Sequence record: AP018399.1
DNA: 64,000 nucleotides
Reading direction: 5' to 3' (one strand)
In this document: piece after piece, positions 21,744 to 46,067 of the stretch
Numbering within the stretch: the stretch's first letter is position 1
How the letters are laid out: every line of letters starts with the position of its first letter
Program-made: the position numbers and the translations under genes
Notes under the pieces: generated by a model
Databases searched by the model: none
Told to the model about the DNA's origin: nothing
Seen by the model: only the letters and a program-made list of their open reading frames with translations

Positions 21744-22127
21744 CTAAATTATATTACGTCTGTCAACAGGTGGACCGACTAATTTACACAAATAGTCGAT
21801 AAGTCTTTGAGTGTAAAAGAATTCCGTCAAATCTATTGACGTGCCGCCCTTGATGTGCGACCATAGTTCAGCGAATCGGTGTACTTCTTCACGGGTAGGA
21901 AGGTCGCTGTCCTTCTTCCGGTTGCATTTGGCACATGATAGAACCATGTTGCCGGTTAGCGTGTTACCCCATGAACGGGGGAAGAAATGGTCACGGGTGT
22001 AACCGTGTGGATTCTTCTTGTCGTGGCCTACGGGGTCCAGCTTCTTGCTGCAATAGAAACATGCGTATTGTTGCAAGTTCAGCATAAGGGAATATGAGAA
22101 CTGCGGTCGTGTATTGGGAGTCATCAC
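21744..22127 (-). CDS. HNH endonuclease
   Basis: CFYC ... TRDHFFPRS ... N ... CAKCNRKK. Confidence 0.8.
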   Translation of the reverse strand: MMTPNTRPQFSYSLMLNLQQYACFYCSKKLDPVGHDKKNPHGYTRDHFFPRSWGNTLTGNMVLSCAKCNRKKDSDLPTREEVHRFAELWSHIKGGTSIDLTEFFYTQRLIDYLCKLVGPPVDRRNII

Positions 22128-30281: not shown

Positions 30282-30390
30282 GGGAATGTAGCTCAGAGGA
30301 CAGAGCGCAGGGCGAGGAAGGGACTGGTTTTCCACCAGTAAACCCATCCAATCTCAGAAGTCAGTGGTTCGAATCCATTCATTCCCACCA
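30282..30390 (+). ncRNA. tRNA-like RNA with extended anticodon arm (109 nt)
   Basis: Acceptor GGGAATG/CATTCCC-ACCA, normal D and T arms, ~33 extra nt. Confidence 0.75.
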
Positions 30391-30562: not shown

Positions 30563-30651
30563 GGACTCGTTCCCATAGCTGGCCGAATGGAGCGGACTCT
30601 TAATCCGACAGCGAAAGCTCATCGTAGGTTCGAATCCTACCGGGTCCACCA
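30563..30651 (+). tRNA. tRNA-Lys(CUU) with long variable arm
   Basis: Loop CTCTTAA; V-arm AGCGAAAGCT; CCA. Confidence 0.85.
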
Positions 30652-32637: not shown

Positions 32638-34299
32638 ATGACCGACCAGATTGACGACACCGCCGAACGCATCAAGAAGCTGCTGATTTCGTTGGTGGAA
32701 AGGCTCGGCCCGGATGCTGACCCGGATATGGTCGCCGAGATTCAGATGATGCGTGCGGCCGACATTATCAAGTCGCACCTGACCGATATCACCAAGGCCC
32801 GTACCATCGTGCTGACTGGCGATACGTCGCACCTGTCGGTTCGCAGCATCATCCAGCGCCTTGCGGATATCGACAAGCCGAAGCGGTACGACTTCCAAGA
32901 CGACAACGTTCACGAACAGGAATTCCTGCGTGGCCTGCTGCATTGCGTCCCCAGCTACATCATGCGTGGCGACGTGACCAAGGAACAGGTCATGAATGCC
33001 ATCGACGGCAAGGAATGGCTGGAACTGCCGGAAGGTCGTGAGTACAAGTGCTACGACTGTGCCCAGCCGCTCAAGGTGGCGTTCAAGGGCAATGAAGTCC
33101 GTATCACTGCCGAGAAGGTGTGCGAACACAATCACACGTTCACCATCGAAGTGGATTTCCCCACGGGTGAAGTCGTGTTCGATGACTGGCCGGCTCGTTT
33201 CTCGGAAGCCCGTGATGCTGGTTTCATCACCGAAACCGATGATGGCGAATCCATCAACTACCTCAAGGGCCAGCGTCAGAGTACGGACAACTATGCCAGT
33301 CAGCAGATTGTCCATCACAGCGTCGGCAACACCTGTCCCACGTTCTTTGTGAACAAGGAAACGGGTGCCATCCAGATTGGTAGCCGCTGGGATGATGAGC
33401 AGGACGAACACGTCACTCCGGAAGGCATGGAGGATGTTGGTTCCTTCTGCACGGACCTGTGGTGGGTGACCATGCTCGACCGCAAGTTCTACGACACCAT
33501 CGTGGGCAAGCTGCCGCAGCAGAAGTCGAAGAAGTATTACGACAAGGAACTGCACATCGCGCACATTCCTCCGGGCCGCTATCGCTTTACCTGCTATGGC
33601 CGCACGGAAGAAGACATGGATATGTTCATGACCGGTGAACGTATCGGCGATGCCAGCGATTTCATGCCGCCGTTCGACGTGCTGGCTTCGAAGCGTCTCA
33701 TGACTCTGGACGAAGCCACGTTCAAGTACCTGTCGATGTGGGGTAAGCCGCGAGGCAATCCGCTGTCCGCTCGTTTCCGCTTCCTCGACTACGTGTTCAA
33801 CACCATCGGCAATGGCCTGCGTTCGAAGGGCGAACTGTTCAACGCTTACAGCATCGCCAATGATGCCGTGGGTGATGTGATTCCGCCTTCGGATGACCCG
33901 CTGGACAAGAAGAATCCCTATCCGAATTTCAAGAAAGAATACAGCACCATCTACAGCGTACCGCTGAAAGACATGCCTACGGATTGGCTGGAAGGCGTCT
34001 TGTGGTATTACGAAGAATGCAAGACCTACTTCGAAAATGGTGCGGAGGGCTATAGCTATGCCTACCCGTCAAAGCAAAACCGGGACGACGAACTCGCCAA
34101 GCACTTCGAAAAGTATCGCAAGGACGGACAAAGCGAAGAAGAATACTTCGCTGCGGTGTCCAAAGCATACGAATGTGAATTCCGGGGTGACATTCCGGAT
34201 TTCCAAACCCGACGCTGGGAAAAGGAAAAGGCTCGCATCCTTGCTTTCATCAGCGACACCATGAAGTACATCAAGGAAGAGCTTGACACGCGAGGTTGA
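32638..34299 (+). CDS. large hypothetical phage protein
   Basis: ~550-aa ORF; CYDC and CEHNH motifs. Confidence 0.8.
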   Translation: MTDQIDDTAERIKKLLISLVERLGPDADPDMVAEIQMMRAADIIKSHLTDITKARTIVLTGDTSHLSVRSIIQRLADIDKPKRYDFQDDNVHEQEFLRGLLHCVPSYIMRGDVTKEQVMNAIDGKEWLELPEGREYKCYDCAQPLKVAFKGNEVRITAEKVCEHNHTFTIEVDFPTGEVVFDDWPARFSEARDAGFITETDDGESINYLKGQRQSTDNYASQQIVHHSVGNTCPTFFVNKETGAIQIGSRWDDEQDEHVTPEGMEDVGSFCTDLWWVTMLDRKFYDTIVGKLPQQKSKKYYDKELHIAHIPPGRYRFTCYGRTEEDMDMFMTGERIGDASDFMPPFDVLASKRLMTLDEATFKYLSMWGKPRGNPLSARFRFLDYVFNTIGNGLRSKGELFNAYSIANDAVGDVIPPSDDPLDKKNPYPNFKKEYSTIYSVPLKDMPTDWLEGVLWYYEECKTYFENGAEGYSYAYPSKQNRDDELAKHFEKYRKDGQSEEEYFAAVSKAYECEFRGDIPDFQTRRWEKEKARILAFISDTMKYIKEELDTRG

Positions 34300-35500
34300 T
34301 GGGTTATAATAAACCCATGACCTACACCGTCCAATACGCAGACAAGAGTCGGCTTCCGACTCTTGTCGCTGCCTACCAACTGGTTGACCAAGCTCTCAAG
34401 GGCTTGGCAATCACGAAGGATTGCGCGGTTACGCTCAATCGCTTCTACTACGACAATGAATTCTTCCTCTTCAACTTCTCCGTGACGTTGAAGGGGACCA
34501 AGCCCTGCATGTACCTGCTTTCCATCCCCAATGACAGTGCGATGGGCATGATGGGCTGGACTATCCGCAGCAACAAGTGGAATGGTCAGCGGGAGCCAAT
34601 CGACTCGCCTGCGTTGTCATTCGGCCACTTCATCCGCAAGACGGACCACGACAAGAACAAGAAGAAGAAATGAACATCAACGAATACAAGAAGCGCAAGT
34701 TCCGTGAACTCAAGGCCAAGAAGAAGGCATTCGGCTTCGAACTATCGGTGCATGACCCGGCTTCCATCATCGCTGCCGCCAAGGCAATCGAAATGGCCGA
34801 ATGGATGGACAAGGGCGTTCTGGTCGAATTCAAGACCGATTACAACGCGCGTGAACTGAAAATCTATACCGATAACCCGGCTTTGGCTGGTGAAATGCGT
34901 CTTCTGTGTTGACAAATCATTGCCAGTATGATTAAATACTGGTAATGACAAACGAAAAAGACATAGCTACAAGGGTAGCTGAAAAAGAAGCTGAGATTGA
35001 ACGTTACAAAGAAATCCTCCACCGGTACCTAACCGGACCCTCACGAACCACTCGCTGGTACAACAACGGCAAGGTTCATCTGGAAGAGCTAGAAGCAGAA
35101 CTAGCTGAACTCAAAAAAGAACTTGACTCTCCAAGTTAATCTGCTATAATTACCCAATCTTCCCAACAGGAACACTTCAATGCCTTGCAGTGATGGTGGT
35201 GTGGCGTATCCCCCGAGCAAAGAAGAACTGGCCGAGCGCGCTTTCATCAAGCGTGCCCCCGGTATGCTCTGCTCGGCCTGTCGTGCGCTGGAATCGTTCG
35301 GCTACGACTTCGACCTGAACCCGGAACTCGCCGACTGGTGGGCCAAGCACAAGGCCGAAGATGCCGAGCGTGAGCGCAAGGAACACGCCAAGCGACTGGA
35401 ACTGGAACAGGTGAACGAAATCATCAAGAAGCCGTTCAAGAACCTGACGGCCGAAGAAAAGCGTCTGCTCAAGAAGCACAACTACCTCTAAGGAACCAAC

Positions 35501-36040
35501 ATGAAATACATTCTCCTGATTCTCGCTCTGATGTTCTCGGCTCCGGTCTTCGCACAGCAGACCGAACAGCGCACTCCGAGCGAACAACTGAACGCTGAAA
35601 TCGCTCAGATGAGCGATGCACAGAAGGCCGAAGCTCTCAAGGCCATCCATGCCGGTCAGTCCGATACTGCGGCCAAGGCTCGCGAGTGGATTGATATCGG
35701 CAATGGCCTCGGTGCTGGTCTGGCCGCTACCGCTGAAAAGCTGGGCGTGGTTGCCAACGACTTCGCCAAGTCTCCGGTCGGCAAGCTGGCAATGGTTCTC
35801 ATCATCTGGAATTACATGGGTGATGACCTGTTGGGCGTCATCATCGGCTTCCCGATGCTGTTCCTCGGTGGCCTGATGTTCGTCTACCAGATGCGCAAGA
35901 CCTATGGCATCTACAACGAAAAGGGCAAGTTCATTCAGTACGACGTGGTTGCTCTGAATGACAGCCGTTGTGGCCCCGGTGTGTTCATGAGCATCGTGTT
36001 CGTCATCTACACCATTGTGTCGATTGTCGTCATCTGCTAA
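35501..36040 (+). CDS. exported/membrane protein
   Basis: Signal peptide and TM helices. Confidence 0.75.
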   Translation: MKYILLILALMFSAPVFAQQTEQRTPSEQLNAEIAQMSDAQKAEALKAIHAGQSDTAAKAREWIDIGNGLGAGLAATAEKLGVVANDFAKSPVGKLAMVLIIWNYMGDDLLGVIIGFPMLFLGGLMFVYQMRKTYGIYNEKGKFIQYDVVALNDSRCGPGVFMSIVFVIYTIVSIVVIC

Positions 36041-36046
36041 GATAAC

Positions 36047-36122
36047 GGCCCGTTAGCTCAGCGGTCAGAGCAAGAGCCTCTAAAACTCCGGGTCGTGGGT
36101 TCGAATCCCACACGGGCCACCA
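36047..36122 (+). tRNA. amber-reading tRNA (CUA), A73
   Basis: 76-nt cloverleaf, loop CT-CTA-AA, CCA. Confidence 0.85.
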
Positions 36123-36129
36123 ATCAAAT

Positions 36130-36205
36130 GCTTTCGTAGCTCAGCGGTCAGAGCAAGAGCCTCTAAAACTCCGGGTCGTGGGTTCGAATCCCACCGAAAG
36201 CGCCA
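36130..36205 (+). tRNA. amber-reading tRNA (CUA), G73
   Basis: Same D/AC/T arms as the previous tRNA but a different acceptor stem. Confidence 0.85.
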
Positions 36206-36245
36206 AGTTGTTGACAAACTCCCATCACTAAATTATACTTGTGCC

Positions 36246-38214: not shown

Positions 38215-38995
38215 ATCTCAAGGTGGAATAGCGTACAGTGATGTGCGTAAAGTGTGGCCCGCTCAGGCTGCGCACCATGCAAATGGCTCCATCAAACAAG
38301 CACCGACTCCGGGGCACGCCAAAAGTGTGTCACGGCCCTTGTGAAGAACCACGAGGGAACTTGGAAAAGGTGCCCGACAAGCTAGTCTTGGGACAACTGA
38401 GACAGTTTCCACCCGCAAAGTGGATTAGGGATGCAACACGGATACCAAGCACTAGTCAAGGTGTAGAACATAAGCATGAGGCTGCAACCAAGTGCGATGT
38501 TCAGTGAAGTGGGACTGTTTAACAGGCAGAACCGCATATACAATCCGAGTAGCCGCAAGCGAAAGGATACAGGGGCGTGTTGTATTTGGTACTTCAAAAG
38601 GGTATCGAGCAACGGCAACACACGTCCTGAGCAACAAAACAACTTCATAGGTTAATGAAATTAATTAAACGCAAAGTTGTTGCCGGTGCATGATGAAAGT
38701 GACGTAATGCTTGACACGCAAGTGAATCAAGCCATTCCGAGGCTCGCAAGGCAGAGGGGTGTTGTGGGAAAGTCGCACGTTTGGGGTCGAACCCTTTACT
38801 GCTCGCAAGGCAGGCGGTAGACAGAACCATGAATAGTCATGCACGACAGTGGAAATGCCACCACTTTAATCTAGGCCGTCATGGTTGCTACTCACATGAG
38901 TGAGTGGATAACGGTAGAAACTTCGCTCGCAAGCGGAGTATAATGACCGGAAAGGTAACCAATCAATGCTGTAATCTCAGGCAGGCTTTTCCAAT
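38215..38995 (+). ncRNA. giant ornate ncRNA, GOLLD-like (~780 nt)
   Basis: No credible ORF, many GNRA hairpins, tRNA context, GGCGTGTTGTA..CAAAAGG and GTAATCTCAG motifs recalled from GOLLD. Confidence 0.6.
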
Positions 38996-39052: not shown

Positions 39053-39138
39053 GCGGGTGTGGCCGAGTGGTCGATGGCACTAGTCTTCCAAACTAGACTC
39101 AGAAATGGGCGCGAGTTCGAATCTCGCCACCCGCTCCA
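39053..39138 (+). tRNA. tRNA-Gly(UCC) with long variable arm
   Basis: Loop CTTCCAA, U73, V arm CTCAGAAATGGG. Confidence 0.85.
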
Positions 39139-39263: not shown

Positions 39264-39342
39264 CGCGCGGTACAATCAATATCGGCAGATGGGCACCCTC
39301 ATAAGGTGTCGGTTGGGAGTTCAAGTCTCCCCTGCGCTACCA
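39264..39342 (+). tRNA. tRNA(CAU), initiator-like C1 mismatch
   Basis: C1.U72; lacks the three anticodon-stem G-C pairs. Confidence 0.75.
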
Positions 39343-42568: not shown

Positions 42569-42659
42569 GCCACTTTGCCTGAGTCCGGTCGATAGGAACT
42601 GCCTTGTAAGCAGTCGGGATAATACCCCATCGCAGGTTCAAATCCTGTGGGTGGCACCA
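42569..42659 (+). tRNA. tRNA-Thr(UGU) with long variable arm
   Basis: Loop CTTGTAA; V arm GGGATAATACCCC. Confidence 0.85.
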
Positions 42660-42667
42660 AATTCTAC

Positions 42668-42744
42668 AGGTCGGTAGTTCCAACGGCTAGAACGATGGAC
42701 TCCAAATCCATGCGATGGGGGTTCGAATCCCTCCCGGCCTGCCA
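42668..42744 (+). tRNA. tRNA-Trp(CCA)
   Basis: Cloverleaf, G73. Confidence 0.95.
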
Positions 42745-42942
42745 ATTTCTCATGACGCTAAAGTTCTGGTTCAAATGGAATGCACAGAAGGTCGCTGACC
42801 AACTGAACGAGCAATATCGTCAGTATGAGGACAACTGCTTTCCGTGGGAAGTACAGCGACAAGGTATTCGGTACTTGATTTTAAAGAAGTACCATGCTAA
42901 TGTATCTGGAACGTACACAATAGCAGCATCAAAACGACATAT

Positions 42943-43017
42943 AGGGGCGTAGTACAGCGGTTAGTGCGCTTGACTCTGACTCATGAAACGGTGGTTCGAA
43001 TCCATCCGCCCCTGCCA
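42943..43017 (+). tRNA. tRNA-Gln(CUG)
   Basis: Cloverleaf. Confidence 0.9.
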
Positions 43018-45201: not shown

Positions 45202-45290
45202 GACGCGGTGCCGGAGTCTGGTTGAACGGGATGGACTGCAAATCCATAAGCGAAAGCTCATCACAGGTTCAAATCCTGTTCGCGTCTCCA
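45202..45290 (+). tRNA. tRNA-Cys(GCA) with long variable arm
   Basis: U73; V arm AGCGAAAGCT. Confidence 0.85.
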
Positions 45291-45978: not shown

Positions 45979-46067
45979 GGGTCGGTCGCATAGTGGCCGA
46001 GTGCAACGGGCTGTTAACCCGTCGAGTTAATACTCCATCGCTGGTTCGAATCCAGCCCGGTCCGCCA
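45979..46067 (+). tRNA. tRNA-Asn(GUU) with long variable arm and G3.U70
   Basis: Loop CTGTTAA; acceptor GGGTCGG/CCGGTCC; G73. Confidence 0.85.

Follow-up and report, generated by a model that had tools for sequence, protein, structure and literature searches.

The stretch of DNA analysed here, referred to below as the window, comprises nucleotides 1-64000 of the genome of Xanthomonas phage XacN1 (AP018399.1); segment 35000-37700 matches that record at 100% and in the same coordinates. The window falls within the 66-kb direct terminal repeat that carries the tRNA island of the phage (PMC5852040). It contains 29 tRNAs predicted by ARAGORN, as well as a permuted tmRNA and a GOLLD RNA. Two neighbouring genes of the island are tRNAs with the anticodon CUA. 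This pair is not novel as such: both genes are annotated as tRNA-Sup, and Yoshikawa et al. reported in 2018 two CUA suppressor tRNAs along with 18 TAG stops among the 592 ORFs of XacN1, whose in-silico read-through gave no targets (PMC5852040). That paper treats the same two genes and is silent on their identical bodies, on the difference between their acceptor stems and discriminators, and on the existence of two paralogs in related phages (PMC5852040).

The original prediction described two 76-nt CUA tRNAs that are identical at positions 8-65 and differ in acceptor stem and discriminator, and ARAGORN, Rfam and direct comparison agree on this description (Table 1). The genes, called type A and type B in the following, start 83 nt apart, and CCA is encoded in both. 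They are identical at 63 of 76 positions, and over the 58 nt of positions 8-65 there is no difference at all. The remaining 13 differences make up six of the seven acceptor pairs, pair 1 being G-C in both genes, and the discriminator. If 13 differences were placed at random over 73 positions, the chance that all of them would hit the 15 acceptor and discriminator positions is about 1e-12; the confinement of the differences to this end of the molecule is non-random.

Table 1. Features of the suppressor tRNA locus of XacN1, in coordinates of the window.
Feature	Position	Strand	Basis or remark
tRNA-CUA, type A	36047-36122	+	ARAGORN, 76 nt; Rfam RF00005, 64.2 bits
Type A acceptor stem, GGCCCGT/ACGGGCC	36047-36053 and 36112-36118	+	direct comparison
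Type A anticodon, CTA	36080-36082	+	
Type A discriminator, A73	36119	+	
Type A CCA	36120-36122	+	
Spacer ATCAAAT, 7 nt, between tRNA-A and tRNA-B	36123-36129	+	identical in L027 and L028
tRNA-CUA, type B	36130-36205	+	ARAGORN, 76 nt; Rfam RF00005, 63.4 bits
Type B acceptor stem, GCTTTCG/CGAAAGC		+	
Type B anticodon, CTA	36163-36165	+	
Type B discriminator, G73	36202	+	
Type B CCA	36203-36205	+	
Probable minimal converted tract in tRNA-A (tRNA positions 26-63)	36072-36109	+	all 11 A-versus-A differences inside, all in the B state
ORF087, 179 aa	35501-36040	+	stop 6 nt before tRNA-A; syntenic marker for finding relatives
Putative sigma-70-like promoter, TTGACT, 16-nt spacer, TATAAT, with TG	35123-35150	+	consensus match, 11/12
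Putative sigma-70-like promoter, TTGACA, 17-nt spacer, TATACT	36211-36239	+	directly 3' of tRNA-B; starts the ORF088 unit
Phage permuted tmRNA, tag ANANTFDYALAA	37177-37621	+	adjoins the CUA tRNA(s) in XacN1 and many relatives

ORF086, ORF087 and both tRNAs lie downstream of the first of the two putative promoters, with no terminator predicted on the + strand in between. This promoter is the likely source of the tRNA precursor transcript, and the promoter matches suggest that the host polymerase would transcribe the tRNA unit early. A Pfam search gave no family for ORF082, ORF086, ORF087 or ORF088. Relatives of the locus were recovered by means of ORF087, which yielded 26 homologs at 31-94% identity, and the corresponding contigs (L numbers) were fetched and scanned for tRNAs. 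In Stenotrophomonas phage RAS14, the protein encoded immediately 5' of the CUA tRNA is 34% identical to ORF087.

Both genes of XacN1 have the fold expected for RF00005, namely an acceptor stem of 7 bp, a D arm containing G18G19, an anticodon loop of 7 nt in which U33 and a purine at position 37 are present, and the T loop GTTCGAAT; the anticodon CUA was confirmed in both, and the gathering score of the family is 29 bits. In phage databases, single CUA tRNAs with the same loop were found in Xoo-sp13, Stenotrophomonas RAS14/CM1, Sinorhizobium Phosso, Pectobacterium CBB and Cronobacter GAP32, and another one in an entry submitted under the name Synechococcus phage BUCT-ZZ01. Scanning IMG/VR and JGI metagenomes with patterns provided 14 more CUA tRNAs; an exact search of IMG/VR with the 58-nt body returned no match, and degenerate patterns were required. 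When 21 phage CUA tRNAs were aligned, the segment C32-U33-C34-U35-A36-A37-A38-A39 was invariant, and 93.2% of cells were paired; shuffles gave 71.8% and slid controls 28-45%. Double-sided changes occur in 15 of the 21 pairs, with covariation at all seven acceptor pairs. The cloverleaf backed by this covariation indicates that the CUA tRNAs are real, selected genes, and anticodon, fold and covariation together mark them as genuine amber-suppressor-type tRNAs, as had been predicted.

The label "Pyl" that ARAGORN assigns to these genes means CUA and nothing more. A tRNA-Pyl has a short D loop without G18G19, a 6-bp anticodon stem and a 3-nt variable loop, and is accompanied by pylS and pylBCD genes. 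The assignment as tRNA-Pyl was rejected on account of the 8-nt D loop with GG, the 5-nt variable loop and the standard T loop; the annotated XacN1 genome contains no pyl genes.

The anticodon stem is weak in both paralogs, with just three Watson-Crick pairs. Type B has the mismatches A27.C43 and C31.A39, and so does tRNA-A of XacN1 (36073/36089 and 36077/36085), while the ancestral-type A found in relatives, which scores 57.8 bits with Rfam, has U27.U43 and C31.C39. Across the family, C31 faces A39 or C39 in 11 of 21 members. Contig L036 retains both mismatches despite a compensatory change of pair 29-41 on both sides, and for this reason the mismatches look selected; a weak anticodon stem could lower suppressor activity. 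A reader might nevertheless take the weak stems with their two mismatches, the missing target genes (PMC5852040) and the type A pseudogene in L033-L035 as signs that the pair consists of decaying or non-functional relics. We hold this to be very improbable in view of the high Rfam scores, the invariant anticodon loop, the strong covariation, the L036 change that keeps both mismatches, the near-identity across diverged phages and the encoded CCA. A B-body allele with C33 in place of the near-universal U33, and with U31 restoring the 31-39 pair, was seen at L025:3550-3625 and L035:4666-4741.

The relatives, which come from metagenomes, reveal two types of suppressor tRNA. Both types are present in L027, L028, L030, L031 and L032, and the contig L026 includes type A alone. 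In the relatives, type A combines the XacN1 acceptor GGCCCGT and A73 with a different body, and it is identical at 76/76 positions in all six of these contigs. Type B has the XacN1 acceptor GCTTTCG, G73 and the XacN1 body, with 0-2 differences in the five contigs that carry both; the XacN1 copy equals L028:3633-3708 (76/76) and is 1-2 nt away from the B of L027, L030 and L032. The A and B bodies of the relatives differ from each other at 11 positions. L027 and L028 have the two genes in tandem, separated by the 7-nt spacer of XacN1, and one or two ORFs intervene in L030, L031 and L032. While the tRNA types are nearly invariant, the nucleotide identity of ORF087 among the paralog-bearing loci is 65-86%. 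What is new here, as judged from these sequences, is that the suppressors form a conserved pair of paralogs whose acceptor and discriminator modules differ. The high tRNA identity among the contigs could in part reflect recent exchange rather than long-term constraint, the region being a mosaic.

In the original prediction the pair was presented as an identical body with swapped acceptor stems. This description does not hold beyond XacN1: the paralogs of the relatives have different bodies, and the identity of the bodies in XacN1 is derived, with B apparently written over A. The type A gene of XacN1 differs from that of the relatives at 11 positions (26, 27, 29, 30, 39, 40, 41, 43, 45, 51 and 63), and at 11 of 11 it carries the nucleotide of B, for which the probability by chance is about 6e-6. 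A gapped alignment of the tract agrees, with 7 other letters and 2 gaps. The converted tract would be at least 38 nt long (Table 1) and at most 58 nt (positions 8-65). In the ORF087 tree, the branch by which XacN1 is placed (support 92/98) has loci with unconverted A and B on either side, and the ORF082 tree groups XacN1 with L028 as its sister, at 99% amino-acid identity. Because XacN1 is nested among unconverted A+B loci, the combination of an A acceptor with a B body is best read as the derived state. We therefore consider it very probable that B overwrote the interior of A by gene conversion, and that tRNA-A of XacN1 is a chimera of A ends and a B body; this confidence refers to the reality and the origin of the pair, as the best explanation as a whole. 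The acceptor ends would then be the ancestral, paralog-specific parts that conversion left untouched.

A recent tandem duplication that preserved the body, combined with selection for a second amino-acid identity that gave one copy a new acceptor stem and discriminator, would also confine the differences to these parts, and amber suppressors are known to change identity when position 73 is altered (PMC9976931). Yet the same acceptor types sit on different bodies in relatives, XacN1 is nested among relatives with distinct bodies, and all 11 XacN1-specific changes in A copy B. The stepwise replacement of six pairs, three of them transversion pairs, with nothing changed elsewhere is implausible as well. 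The distinct bodies of the relatives already largely refute this model, to which we give only a very small chance.

In short, gene conversion is the preferred origin, and it may have acted as short-tract conversion between the neighbouring copies, or the phage may have received an already converted allele. The latter variant, which is compatible with conversion, holds that a ready-made chimeric A was imported from another phage in a recombination patch spanning the 3' half of ORF087 and tRNA-A. XacN1 and the soil-metagenome contig L028 are about 99% identical apart from short divergent patches; in 100-nt windows, identity falls to 62-82% at 34291-34687, 35188-35387 and 35588-36084, and the last of these patches ends within tRNA-A. 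This break in the identity from about 35588 into tRNA-A would fit import, as would the 94% identity of the XacN1 ORF087 to P0001/L024, compared with 75% to L028, and the tRNA at the A position of L025, which equals a B allele at positions 6-67. Against import it can be said that a donor carrying the XacN1 allele did not turn up among the contigs recovered, L024 ending at the ORF087 stop, and that the A-B-A pattern requires a B-to-A conversion somewhere anyway. We rate the import variant as possible but rather unlikely.

Whichever route applies, the region is, on this evidence, a fine-scale recombination mosaic among XacN1-like phages. The soil-metagenome contigs that align to it are the same unconverted relatives. 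An independent wastewater run contains all sampled words of the chimeric A allele, which argues against an assembly artefact. The A-position tRNA of L025 may represent a second, longer conversion. HNH endonuclease genes were observed directly beside the suppressor tRNAs in three contigs (L025:3639-3920, L032:4368-4646 and L035:4755-5033), and such neighbouring endonucleases could supply breaks that drive local conversion. In XacN1 itself an HNH gene is located elsewhere in the window (ORF062, 21744-22124), and it is among the few genes that end in TAG. The process resembles the concerted evolution of tandem tRNA and rRNA genes, in which non-reciprocal copying likewise homogenises the interior. 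Unlike ordinary concerted evolution, in XacN1 the conversion would have taken place across different acceptor and discriminator modules, leaving a persistent natural "body swap" chimera.

For the analysis of stop codons, a non-redundant XacN1 genome was assembled. Naive ORF calling over-counts TAG stops through shadow frames, and strand-aware calls and then coding-potential calls were used instead. Among 384 confident genes from the coding-potential calls, 249 end in TAA, 129 in TGA and 6 in TAG. TAG accordingly ends 1.6-3% of XacN1 genes (6/384, or 18/592 in the published annotation; PMC5852040), in line with the prediction that TAG stops are rare but present; as a bulk trinucleotide, TAG is commoner than TAA. 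Read-through ORFs with at least 100 codons on both sides of the stop numbered 7 for TAG, 17 for TAA and 15 for TGA; shadow frames accounted for the top cases. No gene split by an in-frame TAG was found in a genome-wide scan of XacN1. The extensions past TAG stops measure 2-14 codons, with a median of 5 compared with 11-13 for the other stops, a non-significant difference (p=0.067, n=6). A phage release factor or synthetase gene, which had been proposed as a companion to look for, is not among the annotated genes of XacN1 (annotation-based search).

XacN1 avoids TAG stops, and nothing points to a gene with programmed read-through. The presence of two CUA tRNAs and the depletion of TAG stops might be taken to mean that some genes use a TAG-recoded code (code 15-like), and this is scarcely credible: TAG read-through ORFs show no excess over the TAA and TGA controls, the standard-code annotation is dense, and TAG ends at least six well-supported genes. 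The genome is not recoded, as the original prediction had judged. Like XacN1, recoded phages (crAss-like, Lak and others) carry a CUA tRNA of their own in a standard-code host and are depleted in the cognate stop, and standard-code phages with suppressors have been proposed as a pre-recoding stage by Borges et al. (10.1101/2021.08.26.457843). XacN1 differs from recoded phages by its GC content of about 50%, by having neither in-frame TAG nor recoded late genes, and by its two suppressor paralogs, whose acceptor ends differ. It also shares features with the phages that have a single CUA tRNA (Xoo-sp13, RAS14/CM1, GAP32, CBB and Phosso), namely the same C32-A39 loop and a generic class I body, often near a phage tmRNA. 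In contrast to XacN1, these phages have one copy, with acceptor stems of many sequences and mostly A73.

Several annotated genes deserve a comment in this context. ORF095 (42695-42952 in the window), which has a TAG stop, runs across tRNA-Trp and tRNA-Gln and is unlikely to be a genuine gene, and some of the 18 published TAG stops may belong to spurious ORFs of this kind. ORF360 (AP018399.1 242125-242568; L041:49125-49568), annotated as "glutamyl-tRNA amidotransferase", is a stand-alone YqeY domain of 147 aa (PF09424, E=1e-46), and its identification as an amidotransferase was rejected since it has the YqeY domain only. ORF295 is a PTH2 peptidyl-tRNA hydrolase, and ORF126 is Thg1-like.

The descent of the two tRNAs was compared with that of other tRNAs. 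The B body finds its best match among 30 phage tRNAs in tRNA-Lys(UUU) of Xoo-sp13 (50/58), and in E. coli genomes both types match a prophage tRNA-Ile(CAT) best, type A at 56/76 positions, generic class I features dominating both comparisons. Type A has six of seven acceptor pairs in common with the O157 prophage tRNA-Ile(CAT), including C4-G69 and C5-G68, and also A73, while its anticodon is CUA, not CAU. In E. coli, C4-G69 and C5-G68 are determinants for TilS (PMC1635315). More speculatively, the type A acceptor might recruit TilS, and lysidine at position 34 might redirect type A to UAA. In a genome scan with type B, the exact acceptor together with G73 was found in cellular tRNA-Arg, tRNA-Asn and tRNA-Asp of unrelated taxa; in the same scan this combination was absent from Xanthomonadales and never occurred with CUA. 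Mimicry of the host by the type B acceptor was rejected, and no identity was assigned from the scattered Arg, Asn and Asp matches.

Efficient suppressors have A36-A37-A38, as is the case in the phage loop CUCUAAA. GlnRS recognises in the acceptor stem a weak 1-72 pair, G2-C71 and G3-C70, and U35 and G73 are likewise read by the Asn and Asp synthetases of class IIb. Type B has G1-C72, C2-G71 and U3-A70, and its charging with Gln is not assured because the other GlnRS acceptor determinants are missing from its sequence. In E. coli, U35 drives the charging of amber suppressors with Lys and Gln; A73 contributes to Lys identity, which LysRS reads mainly from the anticodon with A73 as a secondary element, and the exchange of A73 for G73 turns a tRNA-Lys amber suppressor into a weaker, partly Gln-inserting one (PMC9976931). 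The discriminator rule on which the original prediction relied is real in this form. As in the laboratory suppressors of E. coli (tRNA-Lys CUA with A73 or G73, and tRNA-Trp CUA charged with Gln), CUA keeps U35, and the discriminator would tip the balance. The phage tRNAs differ from these suppressors in that they are natural genes of a Xanthomonas system, and in that type B lacks the GlnRS acceptor determinants. By E. coli identity rules, Lys for A and partly Gln for B is a plausible best guess. The conservation of two acceptor and discriminator types fits a functionally relevant difference at the acceptor end, and that A and B insert different amino acids is a tentative idea, which we think somewhat improbable.

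In the course of events that we infer, from expression and charging to the inserted residues and the target, the pair would be co-transcribed with ORF086-087 from the host-type promoter early in infection and then processed. Host synthetases would charge the products, A most likely by LysRS (U35 and A73) and B less efficiently, partly by GlnRS (U35 and G73). The charged tRNAs would compete with RF1 at UAG. Because the phage itself hardly uses TAG as a stop and is without in-frame TAG, read-through would occur mainly on host messages, or in rare phage nonsense mutants at TAGs derived from AAG or CAG. These are the preferred Lys and Gln codons of XacN1, with 4794 AAG and 2355 CAG codons.

It is conceivable, though we put this lower than the bare difference in amino acids, that the two genes form a selected suppressor module with two identities, in which the acceptor and discriminator modules survive conversion and recombination while the bodies are interchangeable, and two residues, for example Lys and Gln, are inserted at UAG. 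If so, Lys and Gln would bring back the wild-type residue at TAGs derived from AAG and CAG, the codons that offer the two most frequent one-step routes to TAG. The pair could then act as a built-in buffer against nonsense mutations for a 385-kb genome, or as an attack of graded strength on UAG termination in the host, linked to the neighbouring tmRNA.

The relatives give some hints that position 73 matters. Wherever an intact A and an intact B occur together (XacN1 and five loci), A73 is combined with G73. In L033, L034 and L035, type A has decayed (L033:3545-3620, L034:819-894 and L035:3547-3623), with a mismatched acceptor and a score below the Rfam threshold, the decayed A of L035 having an anticodon that reads TTA, and it is in exactly these three contigs that type B has A73 in place of G73. 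This pattern is suggestive; it represents a single event, and L037, where a lone A-like tRNA has G73, runs counter to it. Relatives with a single suppressor carry either discriminator, A73 or G73 (L025, L036 and Xoo-sp13 versus L037). Because of these single-suppressor relatives and the decay of type A in L033-L035, a fixed requirement for two identities does not seem to be universal.

The two genes might also be redundant copies with the same charging and function, kept for dosage (four copies with both terminal repeats), the acceptor difference being a matter of neutral history. Conversion needs flanking homology, so the gene ends would escape it without selection; the single-suppressor relatives with either discriminator and the chiefly anticodon-based identity of LysRS, in which A73 is secondary (PMC9976931), are also in keeping with redundancy. 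The invariance of both acceptor stems across lineages whose neighbour genes are 65-86% identical speaks against it, as do the free variation of acceptor stems in more distant relatives and the appearance of A73 in B exactly in the clade with the decayed A, a single event. Redundancy is a minority reading in our estimate.

The pair bears on the question of why phages with the standard code carry suppressor tRNAs, and it makes this problem experimentally tractable. The cultured phage and its metagenomic relatives provide a natural series, in which type A occurs on its own body or, in XacN1, on that of B, and type B occurs with G73 or with A73; this series separates the effects of the module from those of the body. 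To our knowledge, no conserved dual-identity suppressor pair has been known in a virus. Should the modules prove to specify two amino acids, the locus would provide the first such viral pair, and genetic-code engineering could draw natural acceptor modules from it. Should the two tRNAs be charged alike, it would be a case of ordinary concerted evolution of phage tRNA genes, and also a caution that identical tRNA bodies need not mean a recent duplication.

The island and its relatives contain further unusual RNA genes. Five tRNAs with class I anticodons, namely Lys-CTT, Gly-TCC, Thr-TGT, Cys-GCA and Asn-GTT, have long, hairpin-forming variable arms of 13-16 nt, like those of class II, and total lengths of 86-91 nt; the positions of the long-arm genes in the window are 30563-30651, 39053-39138, 42569-42659, 45202-45290 and 45979-46067. 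Lys-CTT and Cys-GCA have almost the same long variable arm. Xoo-sp13 has normal versions of 75-76 nt of the long-arm tRNAs, and an 89-nt Lys-CTT is also found in L036. Other tRNA-like genes were found with Rfam only, with no call from ARAGORN (30282-30387 and 39265-39337 in the window; L037:2754-2837 and 2850-2950), and have extra sequence in or near the anticodon arm; the one at 30282-30387 may be the "TTC pseudogene" of the XacN1 paper. XacN1 and nearly all relatives (L005, L003, L025 and L027-L037) have the permuted tmRNA, with the tag ANANTFDYALAA or variants of it, within 1-3 kb of their CUA tRNA(s), and in XacN1 it is followed by the GOLLD RNA (38570-38983 in the window). Finally, the chromosome of a Cellvibrionaceae MAG (L046:4148-7890) contains a phage-like array of 19 tRNA genes in 3.8 kb, one of which is a tRNA-Arg with the exact type B acceptor.
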